DNA of 64,000 nucleotides from Bugula neritina. Lineage: Eukaryota; Animalia; Bryozoa. Below, piece after piece: positions 639 to 56,642 of this stretch. The DNA is taken from the NCBI GenBank assembly GCA_964035545.1, contig OZ037771.1, forward strand, positions 5,613,190 to 5,677,189. Direction: 5' to 3'. Within the stretch, counting starts at the first letter, position 1; each line of letters starts with the position of its first letter. Below the pieces are notes generated by a model. That model was given only the letters and a program-made list of their open reading frames with translations, made no database searches and was not told the DNA's origin. The position numbers were made by a program, and so were the translations under genes.

Positions 639-3412
639 GGTGACAGCTAGCTGATAAATGATGAGCCTGTGTGTTCATAGTTTAGCAATATGGCTGTCTA
701 AATAGCTTAAGCATCTGTTTCCTTGTTTCCTCGTTGAAATAACTGCTATTTATTAGTGAGAAACTGGTTTTGCTTTATCAAAAACATATTCAATAAGAAT
801 TTAATTGGATCAAAACCAGATGCACTGCTTTAGCTACTCCTTGTCGTGGTTGCTACTGTCTTTTTTTATGTTTATTATGCAGTTATATTATAGCAACTAC
901 AATATAGATTAGACAGCATAATAATAAAGGACTGTATTTATTCAAAGGCAAGAATGTGACAAGTAAAACTTTGAGATACAACTGCAAAAAGGTTAGCTAG
1001 TTAGCTGGTCTAGTTTAAATATAAATTGCTGCTGTAGCTATAGCATTCATATAGTGATACCAAACAAGATCTCTATACACTGTATGATTTTACACTTTTA
1101 ATATGATTAGGTAATTAGTAATTTTTACTGCATTATCAATAATGTCATCGTCTGAACAACAAGCAAACGGCTATCAGTTTGCAATATATTATAATATAGT
1201 ATAATATATATTTTGCTTATAATACAAATTTACAATATCATCATTTAACAATAAATTAAAGAATAGAAGCTCATATAATAAGTGTTGAAGCAATGACATG
1301 GCTGTTACCGAAGGCATTAAAAATGAATTTCAGAAATTACCAGCGCTGTTTAAAACCATACTTTTCTTTTATTTGAATGCTAAAATAGCACTAATCAATA
1401 ATGTACTTTATTTAAAATTAGTTATTATTATGAGATTATATTCTTCTTGAAATATAGGAAACATTTGAAGCAACAATTTTATAATATGCAGTTATCCTCA
1501 AACATGATATCGTCATTTTTAAAATTAGGTATGATCTTAGCATATAAATGAATGGATACAATTTGAGCTTATTTGTCAACAACAATTTTTTTTTTTGGTT
1601 GACTTTGCAAAAAGAGTTGCACTCTACTTTAATTTTTCTGCGAGATTTAACAATTTCCTTCACACCCATGACTGCAGATGCAGTAAATGATTATTGTATA
1701 AACAGAGCTAGTAGTTGTTAGCATCATGGATTACCATATGTTAAACTTACATGACCTTAGATATAGACAATTAGACAATAGCTGTAATGCAGTACAAATA
1801 ATATTACTCTGACTACTTGCCAAGAAGCAGTTATACTGGAAGTCTGTGGACAAGTAAATCAAAGCCTTTGCAATTTAGTGATGTATGAATAATACATTCG
1901 CTATCAAATTACTGTATCTAGTAGATAATGTCAAATAAAACATGGAAGACAACTAGCAATCTACTGTAAAAAGGTCAAACATGCTGCTAAAGGTTTTTCT
2001 CAAATCTATGAGCTATCTAGACTTTCATGGCTCACAAGTGCAAATACTATTAGCAATACTTCAATCTATGCATTGATACTAATAATTGCGGAATGGCTGT
2101 TCACTGTTGTGTATAAGTTTGATAATAAATCTGCCTACTTGAATGCTCTTATAGGTAAAAAGACATTTACGTAAAATAACCACCAGGAAAAAAACCATTG
2201 CCAGTTTTTGACAAACGTATGACTATAATCACCTCTTTAGATTATTTTGTCAAGGGAAAATGAATATAATTAGCATACAGTTTTTGAGGAAATAAAAACA
2301 GTTTCTTAAGCTAAAACCTATTATACGCAGCCGAATAAAATGAACTGTTAACGAAAACCGATTCCACTAAATATTGCATATCAAGCAGCAAAAAATTGTA
2401 ACTATACCGACAATGAATCAGTTATCAAAAGGTATGGATAATAATTTTAGTATTGCTGTGAAGGCTAGACAAGGAACTGTTTTCTAGTAACTATTATATA
2501 GTGGATCTATTTATAGATAATTGCTTAGGTGCTAGAAGTAACAGATAACAATTGGGGTTCAAGTTCTTACAGAACACAATACATGTTTCGTAATCTATTG
2601 TATTCTTAGGCTGATTGTTCACATCGCAAAGGTTTGAGGAAAAATATGGCTGTTTTTTGGCATCACACATAAACTTTTAACAGATCAAAAATATTTGTCT
2701 CCGACGTTTGTAACTGTCAGCTGCAACAGACAGTTTCTATAATTGAAAATGCTTCAATGTAGACAGACTTATACGCTGTAGATTATTTGTCATTTCATCT
2801 TATAACAAAATGCAGCTTGAATTGTGTGATTATCCGAACAACATGAGGTCTATCACAGTTATATTCTCTTGTTTTAGAATGCAGATTGAAAACATTTGTA
2901 ATTTTGTTAAAGTAAAAAAATTTAGAAATTAGGTCAAAAAGCAGATGAAAAATTAAGCTTTATATTAACCACTAGCATAAAAAAGTTACTGCATAGAATA
3001 GCTGGCAAGAGGCACAGAAGTTGTATTGTTCATATTTAGGTACTCCAGTTATTTTAGCAACTAATCATGCATTACATAAAGAAAATATTATAAACTAAGG
3101 AGAACAGGTTTTTTTGTGAACATAAATATTGTTACCATGGTTACGCCACTTGACAATTCTATATAATTATAATATAGCAATAGAATAATAAATGAATTGA
3201 TAACTGTTTCATAATGCATCCATTACTATTGTAGTAGTATCACTAGTTCTAAATCTATACAAGTTATTATAATGTATAACTATTGCACTTTAGCAACACA
3301 GTCATGCATGTCATTAAGTGCGTTGTATACCAGAATATGCAGCTTGCAGTACATTACAGAGACTAACTACTTAACTTTTACATTAATGTATCTATTCATT
3401 CTCCAAGTTAAA

Positions 3413-4899
3413 CTTTGCCTAGGGTGTTGAAGACACTTATACGATCAAATTGTCTCATATTGTTGTAGTGGTGGTGAAATGCACACAGTCTATATATAAG
3501 ATGATGACGGAAAACATAGAGAACTATAACAATGATAGCAGCTATTACAGAAAACGAAATGATTAAAATGAGGTTTTTCTGTAAAATATCTTTTGTCTCA
3601 GTAAAGCTAGAAAGTTTTTCAACTTCACTTGAGATAATTGATGTCGTCGGATTGTTGTAAAATAATTGTTATCTTCCGTTGTTTTCAAAGTGATAATTGT
3701 TGTAGAGTCAGAACTTTTGCTCTTATAATCAAAGTTTTGTCACAAACTTTTTGAAAAAAATTTTAGATACAAAACAAAACTATTGTTTGGGGCTGAGTAG
3801 GGGCTGAGGCTAGGTGTGCCTGTAATAAACAGCTCCTCTAAAGATTTGTGTAGCGGGTATAACTCCGAATAGGCATAGCAATGTGCTGGTAGGTAGTTCT
3901 GCTTCATTCTGTAGCCACATGGTGCAACATGTTATAATAATAAATTCTTATATAGCAATCCCTTATTGTTAAAGTTAAAGTTGGGTATAGCAGGTTGAAT
4001 GCATGCAATGAAGAAGTGATAAACATATCCTGGTAACAAAAAATTGCTTTTATTACATTATTAAAATAAAACCTTAATATTAAAATTAATCAAACATGTC
4101 GAAGATCAGTTTTTCCAATTTTGCACTCAAGTGCACAGCAATCAATTCAAAAATAATTATGTAACTCGGCACTAATATGGCATTATACTGGTTCATAAAA
4201 CCTGGATTTTAGTTCCAGAATGAAGCAACCCACTGACATCATATTTTATATGACGCTTACATATTCTAGTTATATTATCAACTTATTAACTCAAATAATC
4301 TGTGCGTATTGAAGAAGATATTATTGGTATGAATTGCACTTGTAAAAGCAATGAAAATTTAGAGTTAGATATTTAAAATGAACATAAAAATCATTTATCT
4401 TAAAAACCCTTTTTGCTGATCAGTAAATCTAATAAAATATATCAGTAGTTTAGCTAAAAGCCTTCAACTATTTTTTGGTAATAGATAAAACACTATATAC
4501 TGTAACATAATACTATTTACAATATACGTACCTGAGTGTCTTCAGAGTTGTCAGTCCTTTGAATGAGTCTCTACTGATAGTTTCATTAGAAAGTAGAATA
4601 TTGTTGAAAGAGATGTTAAGATGTAAGAGTCGTGTATTGGAGGCAAATACGAAGGAACCTATGAATGAAATCTTGTTGTAGGAGAGATCAAGATACTCAA
4701 GGTCAGTGAGAGGTGAAAGGTCAGGTATGTTGCTGAGGTGATTGTGATTGAGTTTTAGTACTCTGATACCAGTTGTATTGAGAGTTGGTGGTACAGAGAA
4801 CTGTGTTATTTGACTATCGCTACAGTCCATGACACCAGGTAAATCACAGGTACATCTCTCTATCTCACAAAGTTTTTCACACTGTCTGCTTTGAATAAA
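3413..4899 (-). pseudogene. Type-C TLR pseudogene C0 with internal deletions
   Basis: Intact exon 2 (4532-4899). Exon 3 (starts 3908) is fused at ~3790 directly to the stalk part of exon 4. CGA>TGA at the RQNFDYKS motif, a frameshifting ~49-nt deletion at ~3660, a recognisable TM (NLILIISFSVIAAIIVI), and a junction at ~3413 that removes the TIR exon. Confidence 0.9.
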
Positions 4900-7120
4900 C
4901 TATAAAAAAAAACAAATGCAAGTTGAACTATTTTAGTTGCTATCTCCGTTTGACATTTTGATAAAAAGCTATAGTAGTAAGCAATACTCTTAATTTGCGT
5001 AGCTTGTATACTATGCACAACTCTTGTGTAGTATGTTAAAAATTGTTTTTTCTTTGCCAAACAAATGTTCAACCAAGATTTAATTGGATTAATAGCCTAA
5101 TGTAAACACTGCTTCCTGTTAATTCTTCTTAACAGCAAATCATTTTCTTGTGAGCAGCATTGCTTTGATGGCTGCTATTGAAATGTTTTATTTATAATTA
5201 GAAGCTTCATATATTTTATCATATTTAAAGATTTTTTTATATTTTTCAGTCTTCTGTGAAGCAAGTTATAGACTGATCTATGAATGCATATTTAAGCGTA
5301 TACAGAAAAATCACGGTTTTTTTCTTTATTGTGAGCCTACGTGAAACAAGATAATATGGGTGATTTTTTGACCATTTGTCACTTTATATTATAACTACAA
5401 TATACAACAATTAGCCACTAAACTTTACAGTAATGGACAACTACAATATGCCAAAATTATGACATGTAAATACATGAGCTAGAATGAGAATGGGAACATG
5501 ACAAGTTTGACTGCGCTTTCTTGTGCACAAACTGTGTTGGTGGTTAAGGATACCATGCCAAGGTATATATTAGACATCATATGAGTTCATAGGGCAATAC
5601 CGTCTAAGTCTTTTTCCAACATCTGGAGCAGTTTGCAGGCAGAATTGGCTTGTTATGAGGTGACTTGAGCATTTGAGTTCAGATCTATAAGGGCCTGCCA
5701 GTCACCGGGTACGAGTGGTAGATAACTCACAACAGCACTCTCACTGCTGACTTCCAAATATTTTTTGCACACATGCGAGACAAATTGATTTTGTAGAGAG
5801 CTGTGGCCGGTCATTCTAAGACAGACCAAGTATTATAGGTGCTGCTGCTGTTTTTAGGAAAGGGCAGCAGCAACTGAGTAGCAATGCTTACTGTTTCAGT
5901 ACTTTTTTTACTAGTACTTGTAATTTTTGTTATTTATTACTATTTAACTTTTCTATTTCTATAAATCTATATCAATTATATATGCATGTACTAAATACTG
6001 GCATTTCAGCACTAGTATAATAGGGTTATTAGACATAGCCAGTTTTTCTTCTGAGCGTTTAGATTTGGGATCAGCCGAGGTGGCGCAGGCGTAACTCAGT
6101 GATGATTCATGGTAACAGTAGCATCTCAGAGGTGTCTCTGCTACAGATTGCCAAGTTTTATTTTCATTTTAGGGTCAAGCTACTTTATTTATTATACATA
6201 AGTAAATCACGATCAAAAATTAAAGTTTGCTGAAATTCATGAAAACGTAATATATGTCGGGTAATTCTATGTGCTGATTTTAACTATGCATAGCATAAAC
6301 AAGCTGCAACATTAAAATGTAAAGTCTTGTCATATGAACTAAATATAAATTATTTATACAGACCGTAATGAAAAAAAGCCATTATGTTCTGTATATCCAA
6401 AAATTATTAAAAAGTTGAGAAAAAGCATAAACAACTGAGCAGAATTAGAAAAAAGAACCTCTGATTATTTGGTTGCATTTGTTTATATTTTATTAATTCA
6501 AGACAAAAAACTATTTACATCAGCAAGTAAATTGTGAAATATAACTACAACTAGACATATATTGAGTGTGTAGTGAATTAAGTAAATTGACCCGCAATAA
6601 CTATTATGTTTCATTGTATATATTTTGCTGCAATTGTTATAATAGCACATATGGCATTATCTTGTCATTATAATTTCATTATACTCATTGAATTAACAAA
6701 AAAAATTCTAAGGCTAAATACAAGTAAAACGTCCACCTATGCACCAAGCACAGCATACAGCTGTCATTAATTAAGAGCACTTGAAGTCTGATTCAAGAAA
6801 TTGGTGTTTGAAATTAAAGTTTGTTGGTTGAAAGTTGAAATGTTTTTGTTTAGCAAATGTATTTGCATTTATAGCCTATAATCATATTTTTTCTTAAAAA
6901 CTAAAAAAGAAGAGAAAAATATAATTGTTATCGTGTTGGTAAAATATAATCTTCGACACCAATGACACTAACGGAATTATTGTAGTTACTGCAGAGGCAT
7001 GTTTTTGCAAGAAAATTATGTACAGCCTAAATATTGGTCCAACTTACTATCTTTACACTAGAATCATAAATATATAGCTGTTCACACTTTCAATTGTTCA
7101 GCAGTTATCCTAAAGCTTTT

Positions 7121-7230
7121 TAGGCCGCTTTGGAATTCCCTTTGCATAGGGGCAACTGTGGGCCCTACTCGATGACCATTCGGCAACCACCATGCGTAAG
7201 GCACAACTATTTGAGCAATTGCAGTAATTT
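7121..7230. repeat. Interspersed repeat fragment (also ~30504-30613; diverged inverted copy at ~53005-53118)
   Basis: Reverse complement aligns with 53005-53118 (aattactg.aattgctc.aata.ttgtg.c.tacgc.tg.tggtt.ccgaatggtcatcg.gtagggcc.acagtt.cccct). Confidence 0.7.
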
Positions 7231-7939
7231 TACTCTGATATTTCGTCATTTGTGTAAGCAAATGTAAGTGATAGAATATGTAGTTAAACTAATTAGCCTT
7301 AAATTAAAATATCAGCTTTAGTAACCAACAACATCTACTAAATTTTTTAAGCTACATTAGCGATGCGATAAAAAATGTTTTAGCATTTCACTGTGTACAC
7401 TAGCAATGCCTGCTGCAGACAAATACGTCTGCACCATTCTCTGTGCAAAGCATCTATTGGTCATTATGGCATTTACCAAACTAAAAGCTATGGAGACCTC
7501 AGTCAATTGTAAGTAGCAATAACTTACCATAGTATAAATTTAACCAAAAATATTAATATCTATTGTCATTATGTATATGTTATATTATTTTGTAAATTGC
7601 TTTTTAATGAAGCATTACTACAAATTTAAAAGTTACTTTTAACCTTTTAAGATAATGAAGAAGAAGCAATGTAAGTATATTGACCATATTCATGTTATCA
7701 GTTTCTTTCAAGTTTAATGTTTTGAAGAAATTTCTTTAGTTATTGTAGTACATATGGTGTATATACAGCATACAAATATATAAAAATTAAAAGTATATAA
7801 GATAGGCTCTAAGATGAATCAGTGTATACTGTAATATGTGTTGACCAAAGACCATTATGAGTACTATGGTGTAATACATGTTTAAAGATAAAGAAAAGAC
7901 AAATTCTCTAATTAATTAGAATTTAGCCTAGTAGCCAAC

Positions 7940-9130
7940 TGCGGTCTCACTTTACCATAATGATAGAATTGGAACTTTTGACGTCAGGTGATTTTACTGA
8001 TGACTTGGAGTTGAGTAATCGCCAAGATGATTTATAATAATCATGAGGTTGATTGATTACTTAATTTAGTCGAGGTGTCGTACTGACTAGGTGAAGTCTC
8101 CTAAAAGGGAGTGTTTGATTTTAGCGCTGGCTACAACTGAATCTATGTGCTCTGTTGCAGGTGAGACTGGCCCTGGATCTCCAGGGATGCAAGCATTGAT
8201 AGATCTGCATCCTGCCCCGTGGGAGGAGATCTCAGACAAAGGGTTAGAACTCCTGTTTGACATGCATTTCGCTATCAGCCGAGCAGCCACCACCTGATGT
8301 TAGTGCCATGCAATTCACAACTACCGCAACTACTACTAGTAATTTACCGGAGTTACCCCAAGCATTGATGCAAAAGACAACCTGGACCACACGGCGTACA
8401 AAACTACTCATTCAGATTTTAATTGGTCAAGACCCAAATAGATAGTGTGACTAGTGTCGACGAACATTTCCTACCATTTAGAGACTTAGAGTGCATGTAC
8501 CTCCGTACTTTGCCATAACGTTCTGTCCATGCGGCACGCACCATTTTAACCACGATTACGTTTTTCGACACCAACGGACAATTAATTATTATGTTGAAAA
8601 TATCGATGATGTGGACCAGGACACCTACCCGGAATTCAGAGACGTAATTATCTCACACATTTCATCATCGTCTCGGAAAGAAATTCCTCTTAAAAGATTT
8701 CCCAGCATCAGACCCACAGGAGAAAGCGACTCCAACAACATCAATACTTCCCCAGATTCTGTAGTCCCCCTTCCTCTGTCGTGGAGAATTGTCCTCTTCG
8801 TGTCCTGTTAACACGCTCCAACTAGTCAGTAGATAGTTCAACTCGTGCTCTTCCTCCACATTCCCCTTCTCTCTCGAAAAAAAGGAGGAAAACTAAGGCT
8901 ACCTCTACTCTTGCTGACACACTGAATCATAAAATTCAGATTGATTTGGACAAATTACAATGGCAGTTTGTCCGGTTGTGTAAGGAGTGACGCTGGACAG
9001 CCTCAAAGTTGACCCAGCTTCAGGAACGTTTTTCATAGTAGACGGACTAGTAAACAATTCATCTTCATCGCATGATTGTACAGGGAGATCCTGCTTTACC
9101 CGGTGAGCTGCCTCAGCTGGTGGTAGCGTA
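7940..9130. mobile_element. Degenerate GC-richer transposon-like segment, family not determined (copy ~31320-32510)
   Basis: Shift to higher GC/CpG, broken ORFs including HVPPYFAITFCPCGTHHFNHDYVFRHQRT, next to an LTR-like segment; no RT or integrase motif recognised. Confidence 0.4.
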
Positions 9131-9317
9131 AATTAAAGTTACATTTTCATGTCTTCTTCTAATATTGTGTTTCAACTGTCATTGTATGCTATACTCAGCT
9201 TTTACTCTGGTTATGGGAATATGTGTGTCCAAATTTATATGTATATATTCTGCATGTTTCATGTTTCAAAAATTTAGTATTAAAATAATAATAATAATAA
9301 TAATAATAATACCAAGC

Positions 9318-9602
9318 TGTTGTCATGGCACTGCGGTGGATGTCTTACCCGTTTCCTTGGCTTCATCTCCTGCCTCAGCTCCTGATTGCTTTGGTTTATC
9401 GGCAGCCGTACTTCCCGATAGGTGGGAGGTGTAGAGATTTTGTGGACTAACCAGAAGCTACGCAACTCTCGGACTACGCACCACTACGCTAGCGTAGTCA
9501 CATAGTTAATCATGATGATACGTTACGCTACCTTTCATCCTATTGACTAGTAATCATCCCCCCACATTGGCTAATGATCAGTGAACCCTATAATTCACAA
9601 CA
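9318..9602 (-). mobile_element. LTR-like segment (copy 32701-32985)
   Basis: TGTTGT...ACAACA inverted termini; on the minus strand followed by gcTTGGTA (PBS-like); internal CTACGC repeats and a 16-bp palindrome at 9483-9498; no TSD found. Confidence 0.35.
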
Positions 9603-10300
9603 ATAACATGGAACAGCTCTCTATGGTTGATAACATGGAACAACTTTCAGCAGCAATTATAATATAAAATATATTTTTGCAGTCCTAATTCATCAAATAG
9701 CAACAAATTTCACTGATATTTATTTTGATATCTCAGATATAAATTGCTTACAACTTATGAGTTTTAGGCAATAAGCAGTGAATCAAAGTTATCAGTAGTT
9801 TAAACCATTTTACGTATCATTCGTCAATTCATGGAGTGAATTGTACATGCACTGACTTAATGCATATTCATGAAAGCATTTTATAAGTGAAATTTGCAGT
9901 TTTCTACAAGGTGTTATAACTTATAAACCAAGCTTAACAGAAGTCTCTAATTTCTGCTAGTTAAAGTAATTGGTAATAATTGTTGTCTCTAGATGAACAG
10001 CCAGCTTTGATTGATGTGTTCAAAGGTATATTTTGATGACAAAAGACAAATACTACAAAGTTAGTAAGATACAAAACATTTAAATTATACATCATATTGC
10101 TTTAGATTAGCTCTCTAACAATGCACAATCTACATATCATGTCTATACAAGTTCTACATTCTTTTAGTCACTTTTTATTTATTAATTATACAGAGCAAAG
10201 CATCAGTTAGGGTTAACAGTTTAAAAGTCATTCAACGTAAAATTGATGAAGTGTTTTGCCAAATAAACAAATAGTATTGGATATTTGAAAGTACATTGAT

Positions 10301-15698
<5,398 letters not shown>

Positions 15699-16869
15699 GT
15701 TGAGAATATAAGGCAAATTATTGCCTATTATAGCTAGCAGTAGTAAAATGTTCAATTTAAGTAACTCCTTTGAGACAAAAGCGTGGTAGTCACTGATCAA
15801 ATAGGCTACGATCTTCAATGAACATCCTTGTGAATGCTGGCATATGTGCGGAAATATGTATAATTCGACGTCACATTTAAGTGTAATTTGCGTTTCTAAA
15901 CCATCAGTGGCTGGAATTAGTTAATATATTATGATAAGTAAATAATAAAAGATAAAAGACGGTGCGTAAAAATATTAACTTAAGCAAACAAGATTAGTGT
16001 TATCAAGTTTTGTTGATGCATACAAAAGTAACAATTCTATTGGCTGATTTTAAAGGAAACGTTATATTTTTAGTCGCAAGCCTTTCATAATCAAGCTTAG
16101 AATGTGCATTAAGTAAATAGCAAATATAATAATTAAAATATATTATAGCGACAGCTGTGTCTTAATTATATATTAGATACCAATTAGTTAATAATCAGAC
16201 AGAACCAACATCATTATTTACTGGCCCATCTGACCCAATTTACTAAAGTGTTAGAGAAAATTTTAATTCTCATTTAGCATATTGTTTAAAGTGTAGATTG
16301 GATCAGAATATCTACTTTATATAATGAAAAAATCTACATATAAGACTTACATATATCCATGAAAAGCATGTTTTATCCATGACAAGTAGTTGCAAAAGTT
16401 ACTTGCTTCGGCCATTTTATAGTTCAGATAGCAGCAAAAAAATATTCACCTATTATCCATTTGTGATTGCAAAATAAACCATTTAGCCGAGCAATTTGAT
16501 CATCCAAGTTTTATGTACAGCTGTTTGGATTTTAATTGTTATTTCATAGAAAGAAAACAATAAAAGAAGCATGATTATTTGAACCATCACATGGCCAAGT
16601 TAAACTACACAGAAAAATAACTTTTATTCAAGTAGCTCAATACTACTAGATTATTATTGGTGCCAAATTGCAAATAATAACTGTTTACTATGCTACCGCT
16701 TGGTGACAAGAATAGCTTCAATGACAATATGGGGGGTTTTCTAACGTTTTCATTATGATAACCAGCAATTATAGTAGGCCGTATTTTTTACCTTATTAAT
16801 TTAACCAGTTAAACAAGTTTTATGAAAATGGTTTTACATTTATTGATTAGTCTTTGAATTAAAAGATTT

Positions 16870-17740
16870 TAAACAGTAAATGATATGCTTGTAGAAACCA
16901 TCGATTAAGTGGTCTGGGCTGCTGGTAGATATATTATTTTGGATCGTGGAATTTAACTCTCAGTCCCTCATCTTACTAATGTGGGGAGGCTATTGGGTAT
17001 TTAGTATTGTGGAACATGTACTATTTTTATCAGTATGTAAGAAAATGCCCTTGAATCTAATGAGCATAGGTATACTACTTGTTTGTCAGTGAGCATAATA
17101 TAAGTGTAATATTTTTACAATCATGTTATATTTGATCTTATTATGTAAACTTGGAGTTATCTTTTCATAATATTGTAGCTGTTCGATATACATGCAGTTT
17201 TGAACGTATTTTTTATTTCTAGATTAGCTTGCAAAGCTACACAGCTTTAAACTTTCTGCTAAGAGTCAGGAAGATATTATTAGTTAGCAAACAGAATCTT
17301 TATTTTTTAGTAACATATATGGCTGCTCGTTTGCTAAAATCTTAGAAATTGTTATATATTGTATTAAAATAAACCTTGTACTAAATAGATACAAATTTGA
17401 CTATGCCACAATTTGAAGATCACCTCTCTTGTTCCACAAAGAAATAATACATTAGATTAATGAAATAGCAAACTAACAAACTCACAGCAACAAATAATAA
17501 TAGACATCACATATGCAACTAAATCATAATATATTGTAGATGTTGAAGATACAATGATGATAATATATGCATGCATAGTGCATTATACACATACTGACTA
17601 GCATACTATTGTAAAAAACATAAATTATTGTTTCACAATACAAATAGCATAACCATGTAATTGGCAAACACTTCGACATTGTTAAGTTGGTAATGGCCAT
17701 TTCACTTAGCACAGTGAATCCATATAAAAAACTGGCTTGT
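16870..17740 (-). pseudogene. Decayed cytoplasmic/TIR remnant downstream of the B1 stop codon (copy ~40190-41063)
   Basis: In frame after the stop and past a second TGA: NNVEVFANY (type A has EECRVFASH). Near 16870-16995: NSLPTLVR (cf. DHLPKLLTR) and DHLIDGFYKHIIYCL (cf. SHIREGFIKTIVETL). Weak, by-eye similarity. Confidence 0.45.
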
Positions 17741-20700
17741 TCAAAATAGAAATAGTACTAAAACTGTAGCAATTGTTGTAGCAACACCGATGGCAACTAG
17801 CTGTTCTGATTGTCCACCAGAAGAGTCTGTGCTAGTACTAACAGTTAGTGAGTCATAGTAATCACTGATTGTCATATCTAATCCGTAGCAATAAAACTGA
17901 GAATCACATTTAATAGCTGGAGATGTAAGCAGCCAGTGGATATAACTAACGTGAGACTCATTGTTAGAGCATAGGACAGTGTTTCCTGTGAGTTCAACGT
18001 AAAAGTTGTTATTCAATGATTGATTGTCAAACTCATTTCGAAATTCTTCTTCAATGTAGTGAATGCTGTTGTTTATTAAGTTAAGGTAATCAAGTTTAAG
18101 GTTTTTAGAGATGGTGATGTTCCAACTAAGAAGTTCATTGCCATGGAGATCGAGATGGGTTAAGTTCGGGTGATGAGAGAAGAAGTCAAAGTCTGAAAAA
18201 TATAAAATTCCACCTTCCTGATTTCCAAAATGAAGCTCCTCTAAAGCTGGAGCACCTCCTAAAAGCTCTCCAGTTACATCATTTCTTAATTTTTCACCAA
18301 ATTTATTTTTAGTCAGCACCAAAGTTTTGACTGGGAAGTTAGTCAGAAAATCACGAGACCACCCAACAATACTGCAGTCAATGCAAACCAGTTTAGAAAG
18401 ATATTGAAATCCAGTAATATTGCGACATGATATAAATCCAACTTGAGAGTATGACAGAGTTATGGTTTCAAAATTATTGAGATACATTTCCATGTTAGAG
18501 CATAGTGGAGTTGATTCATTTCTCCGGACATCTTCAGACACGGTGAAATCATTATAATCAATAGCTAAAGTTGTCAGATGTGCAGGGACAAAGTGAAAAT
18601 TAATTCTTCCCCTGTTTAGCAATGTACGAACAACACGATTCCAGTAATATTTTACTGTAAAATCTACAGCTTTATCAGACACATAATCGATTCCTTGTGT
18701 TCTGATATAATCTATAGCAAAGTTGATCACATTTACTCGATTTAAACATAACAATGAAGTAGAAAGAAAGTCAAGTGAACATTTCTTTTGAAGATGGTTC
18801 ATAAGTTCGTTGAGAACATGGATGTCAACTATGTTAGGAATGTGAGTTACATTCCAATCAAACCTATCTTCAGTGAACAAATAACTATCTTGGTTACAAT
18901 CTAGAAGATCTGGGTAGTAGTCGTGTCCATCACATGAATACTCTTTAGTCATACCACGAAATGCAATGTAACGAATGAACGGGGTCTGGAGTTTTGTGTT
19001 GTTGAACAGTGCTTCAACAAATGGTTGTAGCTTTTGACCGTCTTCACCACACGACACTTGTAGAGAAGAATGGTTTAACTCATTCTGACTAATATCCAGA
19101 TATAGCAGTCCTTGACAGTACTGTCGCAAGTTTAGGGTTTCTGGAGTTTGTATGTGGTTCGCTTGCATGGACAAAACTTGTAGTGGAATTGTAGAAAGAG
19201 GAATGACGTCACCAATGTTGATATCCCACCAGCAGAATTTTGTACCCTTCTCTGGAATGTTTATATGATCAAGTAAAAGTGTGTGAAGTTTACTGTTTGC
19301 TATTCCGTTAAAAATGTCAGAAAGGTGTTCTTTTAACGGATTACAGGATAAGTCAAGTCTTAGTAGAGAATTTGTAAAACTTTTTAAGAATTCTTGATTA
19401 ATACTATTTACATGACAATTTCTGGCAGAGAAACGTTTCAAGGGCAAACTTGAAAGAGGCGACATTGAGATGTTGGTCAACTTTGGAGTATCACAGTCAG
19501 GCCCACCTGCAAAAAAATATTATCAACTAAATTACTTTTTTATAGAATACTTGGAACATGAGTATAAAAAAGCAGCTACTCATTCCAAACTATGTTGTAA
19601 ATGTAATAACTGGCTATAGCCTTCGGGTATACTCAGACTGCTGTTTTAATAATTTCCTGAGTAAAACACATGCAGGGAAGTATTTTGATAAAAAATCTAG
19701 AGAATTTGATCGATTATATTTGATATTTTGTGATCTTAAAAACCAGCTTTCTGTTGTTACAGTTGAGTTTCAGAATATTACTTTTAACTAGTAGCCCACT
19801 TATTCAACCAGAGAAATTATTAGACAAAAACAAATTTTCAGCATGCTTAAATTAATTGCAGAATGTTATATAAAATTTCAATTACTGACACAAATTTTGC
19901 ATTTTAATCTACTGAGTCGTTACAATTTCAAAGTTTGAAGTTTTAAGCAAAATGGCCATCATTTGTTTTACTGACAATAAAGCTAAGCGATGTTTGACAA
20001 ACAAAGCTTTAAAACTATAAATATCATAAGCTTCTCACATTATGAGATTAAAATCATTGAAATTTAAAAATATTTAGATCCTCATTATTAGCAAAATCAG
20101 TAAACAAATTTTATAAGCTGAATCTATTTTGTACTAATTTAATTTAATGTAATCACACAAAGAAATCGTTTGTTATAGACAGCAGAAAGTTTTATATGTT
20201 GATACCAATAGCAGCAGGAGGTAGATACCCTATATTTATACACATTGATGTCAAAATCTCACAATGTACTTTGAGTTTTTGGGAGATGTAAAAGCTGTTA
20301 CTTATATTGCATTCTTAAAAATAACTGGTGTGCTCTACATATAGTCATCTTAAAGGTTAAAATTCTCAAGCTACTTTTTGGAAAATAATTGCCCCCACTG
20401 AGAATCGAACCCGAGACTGCTGGCAAGCAAGTGTGCTAATACCAATACACCACGGGGATCACTGATAAACTTAGCACAATACTTATGATTTTATCTATCT
20501 ATCTATATATGCAAAACAGCAATGCAATATTTTAGCAATATTTCTGTATTATTAAGAAAAACTCAATTTAACTTTGTTTTACAAAAATAATTTTTTCCAC
20601 GGCTTAAACTAATGACACAAAAAATAACCATATCTCTACGTTAATTACTGAACATTTTTCATGATCACACTCAATCATGATTATTTCCTTGAGCATGACT

Positions 20701-22910
20701 AATATTAGCACCATGTTACCTATAGCATATCCTCATAGCAACTTAATATATTTTAATTTTAAACTTATCTATTTCAATATTTTGTGTTTTTTTTATATAG
20801 GGCACTAAACACATAAATTTAGGTTACTCACCAATGCTCAATGTGTGTAGTCTGTGAAATTCTGTAAAGACTGTGCTAAATGCTGGGGTTCCAATCAAGT
20901 AAAGTTCTTCTAGTGAGTTGTTGAGAGGAGCCAAGGCTGAATAGTCAAACCCTTGAGCAGGTCTGTGACCGTCTTTCTGTTTCAGTCTACAAGTTGGGCA
21001 AACATAATTCATACAAAGAAATTAACTATAACGGCCAAGAACAGTTTAGCGAAAACTTAAATTTTGAAGATAATACCAGTAATTTTTAATAAAATTTAAC
21101 TGGTTCACCCTTGCAATAAAAATAAGCATAATAAATTTATTTATACTTTTATTAAAAGAACATGACTTAATATGCAATTCACAGAAACACATCTGCATAC
21201 TTATGTAGTTTACTAGGATCAGAAATTTCAATTTATACTGCAATTCATATGCATGCTGCTATTTATAGACAGTTTAAGCTGAGTGATTTTAAAAGGTATT
21301 CTTCTTACAGCTAACTTTTTTTGTAAGAAAAAAGAAATAATCCATTCAATTAGTACTACAATATATCAATTCTGCCTAAATGTAATTTATGTTTTTTGCT
21401 CTAAATATAGGAATTTTTTATAGTCTTTTTATTCTACTTGCCATTGATTTAATGAAATTATTTGCTATAAAATAATATGTACCTGAGTGTCTTTAGAGTT
21501 GTCAGTCCTTTGAATGAGTCTCTACTGATTGTTTCATTAGAAAGTAGAATATTGTTGAAAGAGATGTTAAGATGTAAGAGTCGTGTATTGGAGGCAAATA
21601 TGAAGGGACCAATGAATGAGATTTTGTTGTAGGAGAGATCAAGAGACTCAAGGTCAGTGAAAGGTGAAAGGTCAGGTATACTATTGAGGTGATTGTGATT
21701 GAGTTTTAGTACTCTGATACCAGTAGTATTGAGATTTGGTGGTACAGGGAACTGTGTTATTTGACTATCACTACAGTCCATGACACCAGGTATATCACAG
21801 GTACATCTCTCTATCTTACAGGGTTTTCCACACTGTCTTCCTTCGGCAAACTATAAAATAATGATGTGAATATGATAATTTCAGTCACCTAAGGTAGTAC
21901 ATGATGTGAAAAGCAAAATAATTTCAGATTTTGGCATAAAATTTATTTTCATGCCTGGTCCTTTCTCAGATTTATTACCATTCATTGAAATCTTTGCTTC
22001 CTTGTATTTTGAAATACGTAATTTGAGTAACCATGGAAACAGTATTTTACTCGCAGCCAACTAGCTTTTAAACACATTTCCAAAGACTTTGGGTTCAGGT
22101 GTATGAGTTTCAAAACACAGTTTAATTGTTTGTATTGAACCAAGATATTGCACTATATGTTACCAAACTGTAATATTCTAGTACTTTACCATTAATTTAT
22201 CTTACGCAAACACGCAAAAAAAGAAAAATATATCTAAATGGTTTATCACAGTAAATATTATAATCACCAGTAATTCAACCTTCAATAATTTGTAATTCTA
22301 ATCAAAATGTGTTAATGGTGGTGTCTTCAAATTGATATTAACTGGTAGAAGTAAAAGGAATAGTAAGAACCAGCCATTTATCTACTTGTCAACTTTTTAA
22401 ATCTGTGTAGACTAGCAATATCAGTAACACCTAAGCTATACGTTACTTATGTAGTTGATTCATTTAATTTTATGGATTATTTTCTACACTCAATAGCTAA
22501 GAGCAGTTTTACGGTTTTTAAGTGTGTACCACACCATGCACACAGCAAACACACTGAACACACACTGAACACACACAACACACTAAACACACAACACACA
22601 CACAACACACACAACACACACAACACACACAACACACACAACACGCACAACATGCACACATACATACTCAAACAAACATAATGAATTTTGAAAAAGCACA
22701 AATATAATAACTGTGGGTACTGCAGGTATTTAGGCAAACACTGCTGCTAGCCATGAAGGAGAGAATACATAAATTTATCTAATATCTAACTTTTTCTCAC
22801 ACTATATATATAGTACTTGAACTTACCTGGCTATGAACTCGACAAATACTACAAAGTAAAAACAGCAACAATGTATATGCATAGCACAGTCTGTAAGCAC
22901 AGCCACCCAT
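17741..22910 (-). CDS. Type-B TLR-derived LRR receptor B1, 790 aa, no TIR, ending in a hydrophobic C-terminal tail
   Basis: Exons 22827-22910 (MGGCAYRLCYAYTLLLFLLCSICRVHSQ), 21483-21850, 20832-20986, 17741-19506; GT-AG with compatible phases, 2373 nt open; ends SSGGQSEQLVAIGVATTIATVLVLFLF*. Confidence 0.85.
20391..20460 (-). mobile_element. tRNA-derived SINE head or tRNA pseudogene in B1 intron 3
   Basis: Minus strand GATCCCCGTGGTGTATTGGT...GGGTTCGATTCTCAGTGGGGGC with A-box and B-box-like motifs; no intact cloverleaf. Confidence 0.6.
22545..22670. repeat. CA-rich (CAACACACA)n repeat in B1 intron 1 (shorter copy ~46200-46300)
   Basis: Directly visible. Confidence 0.9.
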
Positions 22911-41063: not shown

Positions 41064-44000
41064 TCAAAATAGAAATAGTACTAAAACTGTAGCAATTGTT
41101 GTAGCAACACCGATGGCAACTAGCTGTTCTGATTGTCCACCAGAAGAGTCTGTGCTAGTACTAACAGTTAGTGAGTCATAGTAATCACTGATTGTCATAT
41201 CTAATCCGTAGCAATAAAACTGAGAATCACATTTAATAGCTGGAGATGTAAGCAGCCAGTGGATATAACTAACGTGAGACTCATTGTTAGAGCATAGGAC
41301 AGTGTTTCCTGTGAGTTCAACGTAAAAGTTGTTATTCAATGATTGATTGTCAAACTCATTTCGAAATTCTTCTTCAATGTAGTGAATGCTGTTGTTTATT
41401 AAGTTAAGGTAATCAAGTTTAAGGTTTTTAGAGATGGTGATGTTCCAACTAAGAAGTTCATTGCCATGGAGATCGAGATGGGTTAAGTTCGGGTGATGAG
41501 AGAAGAAGTCAAAGTCTGAAAAATATAAAATTCCACCTTCCTGATTTCCAAAATGAAGCTCCTCTAAAGCTGGAGCACCTCCTAAAAGCTCTCCAGTTAC
41601 ATCATTTCTTAATTTTTCACCAAATTTATTTTTAGTCAGCACCAAAGTTTTGACTGGGAAGTTAGTCAGAAAATCACGAGACCACCCAACAATACTGCAG
41701 TCAATGCAAACCAGTTTAGAAAGATATTGAAATCCAGTAATATTGCGACATGATATAAATCCAACTTGAGAGTATGACAGAGTTATGGTTTCAAAATTAT
41801 TGAGATACATTTCCATGTTAGAGCATAGTGGAGTTGATTCATTTCTCCGGACATCTTCAGACACGGTGAAATCATTATAATCAATAGCTAAAGTTGTCAG
41901 ATGTGCAGGGACAAAGTGAAAATTAATTCTTCCCCTGTTTAGCAATGTACGAACAACACGATTCCAGTAATATTTTACTGTAAAATCTACAGCTTTATCA
42001 GACACATAATCGATTCCTTGTGTTCTGATATAATCTATAGCAAAGTTGATCACATTTACTCGATTTAAACATAACAATGAAGTAGAAAGAAAGTCAAGTG
42101 AACATTTCTTTTGAAGATGGTTCATAAGTTCGTTGAGAACATGGATGTCAACTATGTTAGGAATGTGAGTTACATTCCAATCAAACCTATCTTCAGTGAA
42201 CAAATAACTATCTTGGTTACAATCTAGAAGATCTGGGTAGTAGTCGTGTCCATCACATGAATACTCTTTAGTCATACCACGAAATGCAATGTAACGAATG
42301 AACGGGGTCTGGAGTTTTGTGTTGTTGAACAGTGCTTCAACAAATGGTTGTAGCTTTTGACCGTCTTCACCACACGACACTTGTAGAGAAGAATGGTTTA
42401 ACTCATTCTGACTAATATCCAGATATAGCAGTCCTTGACAGTACTGTCGCAAGTTGAGCGTTTCTGGAGTTTGTATGTGGTTCGCTTGCATGGACAAAAC
42501 TTGTAGTGGAATTGTAGAAAGAGGAATGACGTCACCAATGTTGATATCCCACCAGCAGAATTTTGTACCCTTCTCTGGAATGTTTATATGGTCAAGTAAA
42601 AGTGTGTGAAGTTTACTGTTTGCGATTCCGTTAAAAATGTCAGAAAGGTGTTCTTTTAACGGATTACAGGATAAGTCAAGTTTTAGTAGAGAATTTGTAA
42701 AACTTTTTAAGAATTCTTGATTAATACTATTTACATGACAATTTCTGGCAGAGAAACGTTTCAAGGGCAAACTTGAAAGAGGCGACATTGAGATGTTGGT
42801 CAACTTTGGAGTATCACAGTCAGGCCCACCTGCAAAAATATATTATCAACTAAATTACTTTTTTATATAATACTTGGACCAGTATAAAAAAGCAGCTACT
42901 CATTCTAAACAATGTTGTAAAGGTAATAACTGGCTATAGCCTTCGGGTATACTCAGACTGCTGTTTTAATGATTTCTTGAGTAAAACACATGCAGGGAAG
43001 TATTTTGATAAAAAAGTCTAGTGGGTTGTTAAGAGAGAATTTGATCGATTATATTTGATATTTTGTGATCTTAAAAACCAGCTTTCTGTTGTTACAGTTG
43101 AGTTTCAGAATATTACTTTTAACTAGTAGCCTACTTATTCAACCAGAGAAATTATTAGACGAAAAAAAAATTTTCAGCATGCTTAAATTAATTGCAGAAT
43201 GTTATATAAAGTTTCAATTACTGAACTGACATAAATTTTGCATTTTAATCTAATGAGTCGTTACAATTTCAAAGTTTGAAGTTTTAAGCAAAATGGTCAT
43301 CATTTGTTTCACTGGCAATAAAGCTATGCGATGTTTGACAAACAAAGCTTTAAAACTATAAATATCATAAGCTTCTCACATTATGAGATTAAAATCATTG
43401 AAATTTAATAATATGTGACCCAGGCAGTCAGAAAAGCACTTTGTGACAAAATTCACATTTTTAGTTAAAGCTTGATTCTTATTTGCCTCTTTATACTGAT
43501 TGATTTGCAGTTTAAATTTTCGAAATCGGACCACTATTGTGTAATAGTGGTCCGATTTCAAAAATTTAAACTGCAAATCAATCAGTATAAAGAGGCAAAT
43601 AAGAATCAAGCTTTAACTAAAAATGTGAATTTTGTCACAAAGTGCTTTTCTGACTGCCTGGGTCACATATATTTTAGATCCTCATTATTAGCAAAATCAG
43701 TAAACATATTTCATAAGCTGAATCTATTTTGTACTAATTTAATTTAATGTAATCACACAAGGAAATCTTTAGTTAGACAACAGAAAGTTTTATATGTTGA
43801 TACCAATAGCAGCAGGAGGTAGATACTCTATATTTATACACATTGATGTCAAAATCTCACAATGTGCTTTGAGTTTTTGGGAGACGTAAAAGCTGTTACT
43901 TATATTGCATTCTTAAAAATAACTTGTGTGCTCTACATATAGTCATCCTAAAGGTTAAAATTCTCAAGCTACTTTTTGAAAAATAAATGCCCCCACTGAG

Positions 44001-46537
44001 AATCGAACCCGAGACCTCTGGCAAGCAAGTGTGCTAACCAATACACCACGGGGATCACTGATAAACTTAGCACAATACTTATGATTTTATCTATTGTTGC
44101 GACATATTGTTGTGTAGCATATATATGCAAAACAGCAATGCAATATTTTAGCAATATTTCTGTATTATTAAGAAAAACTCAATTTAACTTTGTTTTACAA
44201 AAATAATTTTTTCCAAACTTAAACTAATGACACTTTTTTCAAGCTTAAACTAATGACACAGAAAAATAAACATATCTCTACGTTAATTACTGCACATTTT
44301 TCATGATCAAAATCAATCATGACTATTTCCTTGAGCATGACTAATATTAGCACCATGTTACCTATAGCATATCCTCATAGCAACTTAATATATTTTAATT
44401 TTAAACTTATCTATTTCAATATTTTGTGTTTTTTTTATATAAGGCAGTTTACATTTTTTTACATCAACTGACACTAAACACATAAATTTAGGTTACTCAC
44501 CAATGCTCAATGTGTGTAGTCTATGAAATTCTGTAAAGACTGTGCTAAATGCTGGGGTTCCAATCAAGTAAAGTTCTTCCAGTGAGTTGTTGAGAGGAGC
44601 CAAGGCTGAATATTTAAACCCTTGAACAGGTTTGTGACCTTCTTTCTGTTTTAGTCTACAAGTTGGGCAAACATAATTCATACAAAGCAATTAACTATAA
44701 CGGCCAAGAACAGTTTAGCGAAAACTTAAATTTTGAAGATAATACCAGTAATTTTTAATAAAATATAACTGGTTCACTCTTGCAATAAAAACAAGCATAA
44801 TAAATTTGTTTATGCTTTTACTAAAAGAACATGACTTAATATGCAATTCACAGAAACACATCTGCATACTTATGTAGTTTACTAGGATCAGAAATTTCAA
44901 TTTATACTGCAATTTATATGCATGCTGCTATTTATAGACAGCTTAAGCTGAGTGATTTTAAAAGGTAATTTTCTCACAGCCAACTTTTTTTGTAAGAAAA
45001 AAGAAATAATACATTCAATTAGTACTACGATATATCAATTCTGCTTAAATGTAATTTATGTTTTTTGCTCTAAATATAGGAATTTTTAATAGTCTTTTTA
45101 TTCTACTTGCCATTGATTTAATGAAATTATTTGCTATAAAATATGTACCTGAGTGTCTTTAGAGTTGTCAGTCCTTTGAATGAGTCTCTACTGATAGTTT
45201 CATTAGAAAGTAGAATATTGTTGAAAGAGATGTTAAGATGCAAGAGTCGTGTATTGGAGGCAAATACGAAGGGAGCAATGAATGATATTTTGTTGTAGGA
45301 GAGATCAAGAGACTCAAGGTCAGTGAAAGGTGAAAGGTCAGGTATACTATTGAGGTGATTGTGATTGAGTTTTAGTACTCTGATACCAGTTGTATTGAGA
45401 GTTGATGGTACAGAGAACCGTGTTATTTGACTATCACTACAGTCCATGACACCAGGTATATCACACGTACATCTCTCTATCTTACAGGGTTTTCCACACT
45501 GTCTTCCTTCGGCAAACTATAAAATAATAACGTGAATAGGATAACTTTAGTTACCTAAGGTGGTACATGATGAGAAAAGCAAAATAATTTTAGAATTTGG
45601 CATAAAATTTATGTTCATGCCTGGTCCTTTCTCAGATTTATTACCATTCATTGAAATCGTTCTTCCTTGTATTTTGAAATACGTAATCTGTGTAACCATA
45701 GAAACAGTATTTTACTCGCAGCCAACTTGCTTTTAAACACGTTTCCAAAGACCTTGGGTTCAGGTGTATGAGTTTCAAAACACAGTTTAATTGTTTGTAT
45801 TGAACCAAGATATTGCATCATATGTTACAAAGCTGTAATATTCTAGTGTTTTACCATTCATTTATCTTACGCAAACACGCAAAAAAAGAAAAAGATATCT
45901 AAATGGTTTATCACAGTAAATATTATAATCACCAGTAATTCAACCTTCAATAATTTGTAACTCTAATCAGAGAGTGTTAATGATGGTGTCTTCAAATTGA
46001 TATTAACTGGTAGAAAGCAAAGGAATAGTAAGAACCAGCCATTCATCCACTTGTCAACTTTTTACATCTGTATAGACTAGCAATATCAGTAACACCTAAG
46101 CTATACGTTACTTATGTAGTTAATTCATTTAATTTTATGGACTATTTTCTACACTCAATAGCTAAGAGTAGTTTAACGGTTTTTGAGTTCGTACCACACC
46201 ATGCACACAACACATACACTGAACACTCACAACACACTAAACACACAACACACACACAACACACACAACACACACAACATGCACACATACATACTCAAAC
46301 AAACACAATGAATTTTTAAAAAGCACAAATATAGTAACTGTGGGTACTGCAGGTATTTAGGCAAACACTGCTGCTAGCCATGAAGGAGAGAATACATAAA
46401 TTTATCTAATATCTAGCTTTTTCTCACACTATATATATAGTACTTGAACTTACCTGGCTATGTACTCGACAAATATTACAAAGGAAAAACAGCAACAATG
46501 TATATGCATAGCACATTCTGTAAACACAGCCACCCAT
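41064..46537 (-). CDS. Type-B TLR-derived LRR receptor B2, 790 aa, no TIR
   Basis: Exons 46454-46537, 45149-45516, 44501-44655, 41064-42829; open frame; same terminal VLVLFLF*. Confidence 0.85.
43411..43670. mobile_element. 260-bp foldback/MITE-like palindromic insertion in B2 intron 3
   Basis: Arms 43411-43538 and 43543-43670 are reverse complements (one mismatch seen, 43521) around a 4-nt loop; termini TA-TGTGACCC...GGGTCACA-TA; absent at the matching B1 site (~20070). Confidence 0.9.
43989..44056 (-). mobile_element. tRNA-derived SINE head in B2 intron 3 (same position as 20391-20460 in B1)
   Basis: A-box TGGTGTATTGG and B-box GGTTCGATTCT on the minus strand. Confidence 0.6.
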
Positions 46538-53237: not shown

Positions 53238-54900
53238 AGTGCACGCCAAATAAAAATGTTATTGAGATTAAGCCTTGGAATTAACAGTAGGTTACAAATA
53301 AACCTGCATTGGTAAGTGTTAATAGAAATCTTACGCCTACAGCACAGTATTGGATCTTCATATTTTAAATTTCAATAAAAAAGTTCCTAAATAAGAAAAG
53401 TAAATTCAGGAAACACTTGCCAGTGAAAAAGTGATCACAGCTATCAGTAGTTTGAAGATAGACATCATGGAAGCATCACTAAAGCCAAAATACGTGTCCA
53501 AAGCAAAGGTGACATACTCAAATTGTTTAAATGAAAAGGCCTGAATGGAATGTTCATATTTTGTAATGAGTTTTCACAATACAATTCTTTTGAATCAGTG
53601 ATTCTTGTATACATGCCTACAGGGAAGTTTTCATATTGCCTAAAGTTGAATATATTATATAATGCAACAGGACAATTACAATACAATATAGCCCTACCAT
53701 CTATATAACATGAGAAAGGGTATCATATACTTATTCTACCAATACTTATAGTATAAATACTAATACTATAAGTGCTTATGGTGTCGGTACTCATACTATC
53801 AGTACTTATACTACCAGTACTTATGCTATCAGTACTGAAAATGTTATAATAGTCATACTATTAGTACTCATAGTATCAGGTTTATCTTCCTGCTACCGGT
53901 CCCATGTAGCATGAAGGCAAGTAAACATCTACCAAATGAAGCTAAGGCCCCACAATTGTGCTTAGCGGTGATTGTGTTGGCCTTGGAGTTCAAGGTAGGC
54001 TACTATAACACTGAGACTAATTATTGCTAACTTCAACTCCTAATATCTATATAGCATGTTGTCTCATTTGATTTCTCTCATAGCAGCAAGTCTAGCCTGT
54101 ATTTAATATATCTAAGCCAACTTAGTCATCAGACAGGGTGCTAAAACAGAAAAGAATAGCAAGCAAAAGCAGCAATAATTAGTATAGTTCAATAGTGGGA
54201 CAGGCGTGAGGTTAACAGTGGGCGTAATAGGCAGTGAGCAAATGAGTCATCCTCCCGAACTAATTCAAGACATGTAGATGCAAAACATCTATTAGAAAAC
54301 CCAACATGCTTGGGTATACAATTACATTGAAGAACTGGGTTTAGCTGATGCGTTCTAGATACATGTGAATAACTTAGTACTGCATAAATGTACGTTTCAG
54401 ATATTTTCAATTATAACATTTACAACTGTTACAAATAATTCTAATATGCCCAAATGTAGATTCATGTGTAAAAAATAAGCAGCTTAAGCAAATATTTGTT
54501 AGTGCAATATAGTTTTACTTTGCAATGATACATAATTATATTTTCCACCACAACTGCATTTCGTTGAAAAAAAACTATGCAAAAAAGGATGAAGCTGTCG
54601 GGAACATCAAAAAATATATTGTATTTTCATATAAATAATTTAAAAGTAATATATTAAGCTATAGTATAAATTGTTATACCATACACAGCATATCTAATAT
54701 TTCATGGAATTTTGTTAATGCAATCACAGCAATAAATGCAATGGCATGTAATGCAATAAAACCTGACAGGCTGTTCATTTCAATTGGACAAATGCTAGTC
54801 CAATTACTATTAGGTATAAGCTACACTTCCTCCTAGAATCTAGATGTATTTTCAGTTTTGCGTCAGCCGATTGTCAAAACTTGTGGCTGGTAGATGCCAA
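53170..54900. repeat. Local direct duplication, copy 1 (copy 2 at 55552-56642 lacks ~53303-53983); each copy begins with (TA)n
   Basis: Both copies start (TA)n-AGTGCACGCCAAATAAAAATG and end GGCTGGTAGATGCCAA; duplicate MKISETYIYAV ORFs. Confidence 0.9.
53727..53879. repeat. Degenerate ~15-bp minisatellite (TACTTATACTATCAG-like)
   Basis: About ten imperfect tandem units visible. Confidence 0.7.

Positions 54901-56642
<1,742 letters not shown>

Follow-up and report, generated by a model that had tools for sequence, protein, structure and literature searches.

The locus analyzed here raises the question of how a Toll-like receptor (TLR) gene of the bryozoan Bugula neritina came to end directly after its transmembrane helix, and whether the truncated product would be a new kind of receptor. 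TLRs combine a leucine-rich repeat (LRR) region, a transmembrane helix and a TIR domain, and a survey reported no TLR in the B. neritina transcriptome (PMC8609888). Contrary to that survey, several intact TLR genes are found at this locus, together with a gene type, B, in which the TIR domain is missing. The sequence studied (hereafter, the window) is a stretch of 64,000 nucleotides (assembly GCA_964035545.1, contig OZ037771.1, positions 5,613,190 to 5,677,189), and positions given without a prefix are those of the window. A preliminary description of this DNA proposed that B is a TLR converted into a GPI-anchored or tail-less LRR receptor, and that a decayed TIR beside an intact ectodomain suggests selection for a non-signalling co-receptor or decoy.

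Structure of the B genes

Two copies of the gene, B1 and B2, are present in the window (Table 1). The exons of B1 (84 + 368 + 155 + 1766 nt) add up to 2373 nt, which correspond to 790 codons and a stop, and all introns are GT-AG with matching phases. Introns 2 and 3 were spliced at the positions of B1 in RNA contigs from family members. Exon sizes, splice sites and open frames are all the same in B2. The searches were run exon by exon on B1. The 28-codon exon 1 has a hydrophobic core (the signal peptide was judged by eye), and Pfam LRR_8/LRRNT matches located LRRs in exons 2 and 4. The AlphaFold model of exon 4 (pLDDT 82.7) shows an LRR solenoid that includes a helical island and ends in a helix, and its best Foldseek matches were the ectodomains of TLR8, TLR7 and RP105 (RP105/CD180 with a TM-score of 0.41). 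The open frame of 790 codons with a TGA stop straight after the hydrophobic segment, as first described, was confirmed in both copies, and no disabling lesions were found in the remaining frame or splice sites of either. The statement that the ectodomain is free of lesions in B1 and B2 is therefore true, but it amounts to nearly a single observation because the copies are not independent: their sequences are the same (100%) over 15300-19132, with a divergence of a few percent farther 5'.

Table 1. Features of the B genes and of the deletion that shaped their 3' end (window positions).
Feature	Positions	Strand	Description	Basis or comparison
B1 exon 1	22910-22827	-	84 nt, 28 codons, signal-peptide-like, GTAAGT donor	94-96% identical exons in D1-D3 and B2
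B1 exon 2	21850-21483	-	368 nt, LRRNT and first LRRs	RNA joint 20986/21483
B1 exon 3	20986-20832	-	155 nt	RNA joints
B1 exon 4, now last exon	19506-17741	-	1766 nt; LRR solenoid with helical island, LRRCT-like cap, Ser/Thr stalk, hydrophobic helix, stop	
B2, second copy with identical deletion	41064..46537	-	Exons 46537-46454, 45516-45149, 44655-44501, 42829-41064	
Candidate GPI omega region	17816..17827	-	D-S-S-G, residues -28 to -25	Rule-based scan; present too in TIR-bearing paralogs
Terminal 19-residue hydrophobic segment, former transmembrane helix	17744..17800	-	Without cytosolic tail	Mean Kyte-Doolittle 2.6
Deletion junction	17747..17750	-	CTA/TCTA microhomology (3-4 nt)	
Last codon (Phe) and TGA stop	17741..17746	-	Taken from former 3' non-coding DNA	
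Non-coding 3' flank, first described as decayed TIR	16621..17746	-		Homologous to DNA behind intact TIR exons in D3 and two contigs of GCA_010799875.2
Short dispersed repeat within B 3' flank	17124..17211	.		At least 9 other genomic places

The helical island comprises four helices within the LRR solenoid (~18620-18883, exon-4 residues 200-287). Its later part is the most divergent stretch among the paralogs (codons 240-300, 54-93% nucleotide identity), and the island is a candidate ligand-specificity region. Intron 3 of B1 includes a short, highly repeated tRNA-like element (20378-20420) with very high read depth that was not called by ARAGORN and is probably a SINE; no tRNA genes were found in the 64-kb window.

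Organization of the TLR cluster

The locus is a minus-strand tandem cluster in which the genes follow each other, in coordinate order, as D4, D3, D2, D1, a remnant of an A gene (A0), C1, B1, A1, C2, B2 and A2. D4 to D1 are located upstream of the window, with the first exon of D1 at 555-638. In the D genes (C7:5570288-5613827, which includes 555-638 of the window), all five exons (signal, LRRs, transmembrane, TIR) are open in D1-D3, exon 4 and the TIR exon are open in D4, and more LRR-TIR genes were found on the genomic sequences C2 and C3.

A 23.4-kb tandem duplication relates 3796-28266 to 27208-51891; the two units are near-identical at ~4900-19100 and ~94% identical beyond 20073, and the junction lies in the 5' region of A. 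The exon 2 peptide of A1 is the same as that of the A0 remnant, a signature of unequal crossover or of an assembly loop. In X4, a DNA run apparently from another individual, the depths of the contigs point to a single B per haplotype that resembles B2 at its 5' end, although Logan depth is a poor measure of copy number.

Other members of the cluster have lost their integrity. A TGA is present in exon 2 of both C1 (14893-15260) and C2 (38216-38583), another one in exon 4 of C1 (12694), and one also in the exon-4 match of C2; both genes are pseudogenes with intact TIR exons. The A0 remnant (2840-5017) consists of exon 2 and pieces of an A gene from which most of the large exon and the TIR exon were cut out, and it is a second deletion product in the cluster. 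Exon 2 (21483-21850 in B1) is 93-97% identical across the A, B, C and D genes while the large exons are just 36-86% identical in protein, a pattern of likeness that points to exon-limited gene conversion. Farther along the window, 53982-56642 includes a 0.9-kb direct repeat (95%) and an 81-codon frame (54894-55136) that we take to resemble the end of a GIY-YIG (Penelope-like) element.

Loss of the TIR exon in a single deletion

D1-D3 are closer, TIR-bearing paralogs that lie just outside the window and were out of view of the preliminary description. Their exon 4, 85-86% identical to that of B, is followed by a juxtamembrane segment, a phase-1 intron and an open TIR exon. B and D3 share 92% identity as far as 17747; between 17750 and 16621, B instead matches the DNA behind the intact TIR exon of D3 (79% identity over 1179 nt). 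The break in homology at 17750 is sharp, with identity of 84-92% up to that point. Missing in B relative to D3 are 848 nt (C7:5578628-5577781), which include the juxtamembrane segment, intron 4, the TIR exon and ~170 nt of 3' flank; the TIR exon of B, its donor and its acceptor are absent. We conclude with high confidence that a single deletion of ~850 nt with 3-4 nt of microhomology fused the transmembrane-coding end to the 3' flank, removed the juxtamembrane segment, the last intron and the TIR exon, and gave a stop two codons later. In another B. neritina assembly (GCA_010799875.2), both contigs read, L034 and L035, have the same flank behind an intact TIR end, and no deletion was seen there. 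In L035 the flank is followed by an insertion and then by the spacer that here separates B from C, which indicates that the gene in the position of B ends with a TIR there (the last 55 nt of the gene were read).

To judge by its sequence, B was rightly described as a gene that derives from a TLR, has no TIR and would encode a protein with a GPI-like or tail-less hydrophobic end, and splicing to a TIR of its own is precluded by deletion of the donor and the TIR exon. The heavily decayed TIR proposed at 16870-17740 was not borne out, since this stretch is non-coding flank and the TIR was lost in one deletion. No TIR match was obtained by tblastn of the A and C TIR exons against 15300-17760 (best E 0.85-0.92); the search with the A TIR had been suggested earlier as a check. 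A frameshift-tolerant alignment with shuffles produced z = 3.5, -0.9 and 0.3 for three family TIRs on the flank of B and z <= 1.2 on the three homologous flanks, whereas the positive control reached z 63-164. The z of 3.5 comes from a likeness of ~20 codons near 16900 to the last TIR helix; it is one of 21 non-control tests and was not reproduced. Pieces of other B. neritina TIR families found nothing in the flank of B (best E 0.16). A genome-wide Pfam TIR search missed even the real TIRs of the cluster and was excluded as evidence.

The C-terminus of B

At the end of B, small residues (-28 to -25) are followed by a polar spacer of five residues and a stretch of 19 hydrophobic ones with no cytosolic tail, which fits the general GPI pattern. 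The rule used in the scan was a simple one, and it returned four omega candidates in B. The same rule also selects D1-D4 and C if they are cut at the position of B, so the omega-like motif was inherited from the ancestor and did not arise as an adaptation. The earlier reading of this end as a GPI signal holds as far as the general pattern is concerned, but the motif predates the deletion. Membrane retention of a helix that is not followed by charged stop-transfer residues is uncertain. If expressed, B would have about an even chance of being GPI-anchored.

By analogy, an ancestral omega motif would be no argument against GPI attachment: stops in transmembrane exons repeatedly made GPI-linked CEACAMs, and also MICA*008 (PMC2832619, PMC4410604). 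In these proteins, as in B, a stop at the end of the transmembrane exon turned the helix into a candidate GPI signal. Unlike B, they have Ig/MHC folds, are expressed, and their GPI anchors were demonstrated or predicted; in B the change was a large deletion and the anchor is a candidate from sequence.

Selection and age

In a codon model of exon 4, dN/dS was 0.64 on the B branch (dS ~0.064) versus 0.39 elsewhere. For the B ectodomain, the test proposed in the preliminary description thus rejected neither neutrality (LRT 2.3) nor the background value (LRT 3.3), whereas neutrality was rejected on every other tested branch (LRT 4.4-49). Private changes counted by parsimony were 19 N : 12 S in B and 10 : 6 in D3, and B was not clearly different; pN/pS between the 5' exons of B1 and B2 was 0.49. 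All branch estimates are weakened by gene conversion among the paralogs, which is also likely to bear on the FastTree tree, where the placement of B had weak support (0.51). The selection previously inferred from a decayed TIR beside an intact ectodomain, an argument that presupposes a long period after the loss of the TIR, lost its basis, since the TIR was deleted at once and the contrast does not exist.

The B branch as a whole did not evolve neutrally (P of no nonsense 0.005). A neutral period of up to ~dS 0.005 would be expected to leave the frame open (P 0.2-0.5), and a neutral stretch of more than ~dS 0.01 is unlikely with the frame intact. Should ~40% of the branch have been neutral, which could account for the raised dN/dS, an intact frame would be improbable (P ~0.0003-0.12). 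The frameshift rate put into this calculation, 0.10 per substitution, exceeds the rate measured in the flank (0.054-0.067). Either the truncation of B is very recent or the gene was kept functional, and the data fit both. Run X4 seemingly has two B-type alleles with differences close to the junction; if so, the deletion would be of some age, but none of the listed contigs was shown to span the junction.

Expression and transcript fate

Spliced family transcripts were present in three RNA runs. Neither contigs over 16950-17749 nor a B-type transcript were seen in these runs, which are uninformative for B: the RNA contigs were mostly 90-99% alike to the locus, with non-B alleles, and their variants matched neither B nor any single paralog of this genome (at most 16/37), which indicates that the runs come from diverged lineages of the species complex. 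As intron 4 was lost with the deletion, the stop of B is located in the last exon, and a transcript with such a stop should escape exon-junction nonsense-mediated decay (NMD). AATAAA signals are found in the flank at 17304, 17217 and 16844, i.e., 440-900 nt past the stop. Together, the position of the stop and the downstream poly(A) signals make a stable B mRNA plausible. Splicing around the stop appears unlikely, since the ancestral donor is gone and there are only weak GT sites near the end.

Relatives and comparison with known systems

The ectodomains of B. neritina EB796_019979, EB796_020371 and EB796_020373 are 70-84% identical to that of B, and that of the Watersipora subatra 'toll-like receptor 4' is 40% identical; all have the same exon plan and a transmembrane helix. 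Intact single-cysteine-cluster-like bryozoan TLRs possess a juxtamembrane segment and a TIR, both of which B lacks. Apparent short forms were rejected: the annotation of EB796_020371 is ended by a frame break with the TIR exon behind it, the tail-less appearance of P0013 is an intron read-through with the TIR exon behind, and P0002 (758 aa, no transmembrane helix) has a frame break in the 2020 assembly with the transmembrane and TIR parts behind. No independent truncated alleles were found in protein searches, JGI metagenome contigs or two contigs of the 2020 assembly (read in part). A distant relative (L055:3004-4686; P0069/P0016 cluster, 10 ENA members) ends before any transmembrane helix and no TIR was found in the 3.1 kb downstream; this gene is possibly an independent soluble LRR-only derivative, or it has a long intron.

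B has an LRR ectodomain with a putative signal peptide and a C-terminal cap, its candidate transmembrane part consists of 19 hydrophobic residues at the very end without cytosolic flank, and the TIR is absent (exon deleted, no remnant). On this domain composition B is to be placed outside the TLR family and fits the LRR-only class (TLR-type LRR region, no TIR). LRR ectodomains without TIR are common in invertebrate genomes, as in the Hydra LRR-only proteins and the TIR-less TLR-like Ciona *CiTLR6/7 (PMC8609888, PMC12816324). In contrast to these, the causative deletion is visible at base resolution in B, a gene known from genome sequence. CD14, RP105 (CD180) and lamprey VLRB are non-signalling LRR immune surface proteins; unlike B, they are old, fixed genes with known partners, and no orthology or sequence relation to B was shown. 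A search for papers on the origin of CD14 with a limited set of terms found none.

Discussion

We lean towards the explanation that B is a young truncated duplicate in a birth-and-death TLR cluster, not yet hit by further lesions, rather than an adapted co-receptor. Decay is routine in the cluster (stops in C1 and C2, deletion in A0), B alone does not reject neutrality, and the omega motif is ancestral; all were counted in favor of this explanation, as was the lack of a B-type transcript in the three RNA runs, even if these are uninformative for B. B belongs to a group of bryozoan TLR genes that form a tandem cluster with birth-and-death turnover. One deletion of ~850 nt took away its signalling part and linked the transmembrane end to the 3' flank, and a later unequal crossover (or an assembly loop) doubled the C-B-A unit. 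With its 5' exons and splice sites intact and the stop in the last exon, the transcript should escape exon-junction NMD, and its product would be a 790-aa LRR protein unable to signal. A GPI anchor or a tail-less helix would be a by-product of the position of the break.

It is unlikely, but conceivable by analogy with RP105, that B is kept as a functional LRR-only protein without GPI, either secreted or single-pass and tail-less, acting as a modulator or dominant-negative partner of its TIR-bearing neighbours. The dN/dS of 0.64 rejects neither neutrality nor the background value, no B transcript was seen in the three RNA runs, and the missing charged stop-transfer residues after the helix make membrane retention uncertain. 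Nonetheless, the hydrophobic helix is nearly full length and was modelled as a helix, the 85-86% identity of the ectodomain to D1-D3 would make heterodimers plausible, and TIR-less TLR-like genes are expressed in Ciona (PMC12816324).

No more probable is that, after the same deletion, B was kept by selection as a CD14-like GPI-anchored, non-signalling LRR co-receptor or sheddable decoy. This view gains from a C-terminus that fits the general GPI pattern, frame and splice sites intact in both copies, the pN/pS of 0.49 in the 5' exons, a B-branch dN/dS not significantly above background (LRT 3.3) and the precedents of CEACAMs and MICA*008 (PMC2832619, PMC4410604). However, the omega motif is older than the deletion, the three RNA runs contained no B transcript, neither the two contigs of the other assembly nor the protein searches had a truncated form, and the purifying selection on the B branch may all precede the deletion.

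That the truncation is an assembly artefact, or that transcripts splice past the stop onto a downstream TIR exon (that of C1), is very improbable. The C-B-A duplication may be an assembly loop, B1 and B2 being identical over 3.8 kb and X4 depth suggesting one B per haplotype, but the assembly was built from HiFi reads with a QV of 53.7 (PMC11480708), the B-type flank is found in run X4 with 0 differences over 644 nt, and the deleted ancestral donor and the weak GT sites near the end speak against splicing around. Slow decay in place of a TIR at 16870-17740 after a point stop behind the transmembrane helix, the mechanism of the preliminary description, can practically be dismissed. In its favor are the likeness of ~20 codons near 16900 to the last TIR helix (z 3.5, one test) and a short EVFA-like word 80 nt past the stop; against it, the same DNA sits behind intact TIR exons in three other gene copies, the TIR signal is absent from homologous flanks and with other TIR queries, and homology breaks abruptly where the TIR exon, donor and acceptor of B are gone.

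A young truncated duplicate would be an ordinary finding: invertebrate immune clusters often contain TIR-less TLR derivatives and truncated duplicates, and CEACAM and MICA already show that truncation can make a GPI signal out of a transmembrane helix. We see a small chance that a CD14-like GPI-anchored LRR co-receptor or decoy is seen here at its birth from a spiralian TLR, with its transmembrane helix made into a GPI signal by the one deletion, and that it is expressed and selected beside 86%-identical signalling siblings. If so, such a co-receptor would possibly shape recognition of the bacterial symbiont or pathogens of the bryozoan. As the event is resolved to the base and near-identical intact siblings exist, the question of a one-step path from a TLR to a GPI co-receptor is testable with the pair B and D3. 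B, if it works at all, would act as a non-signalling anchored sensor.
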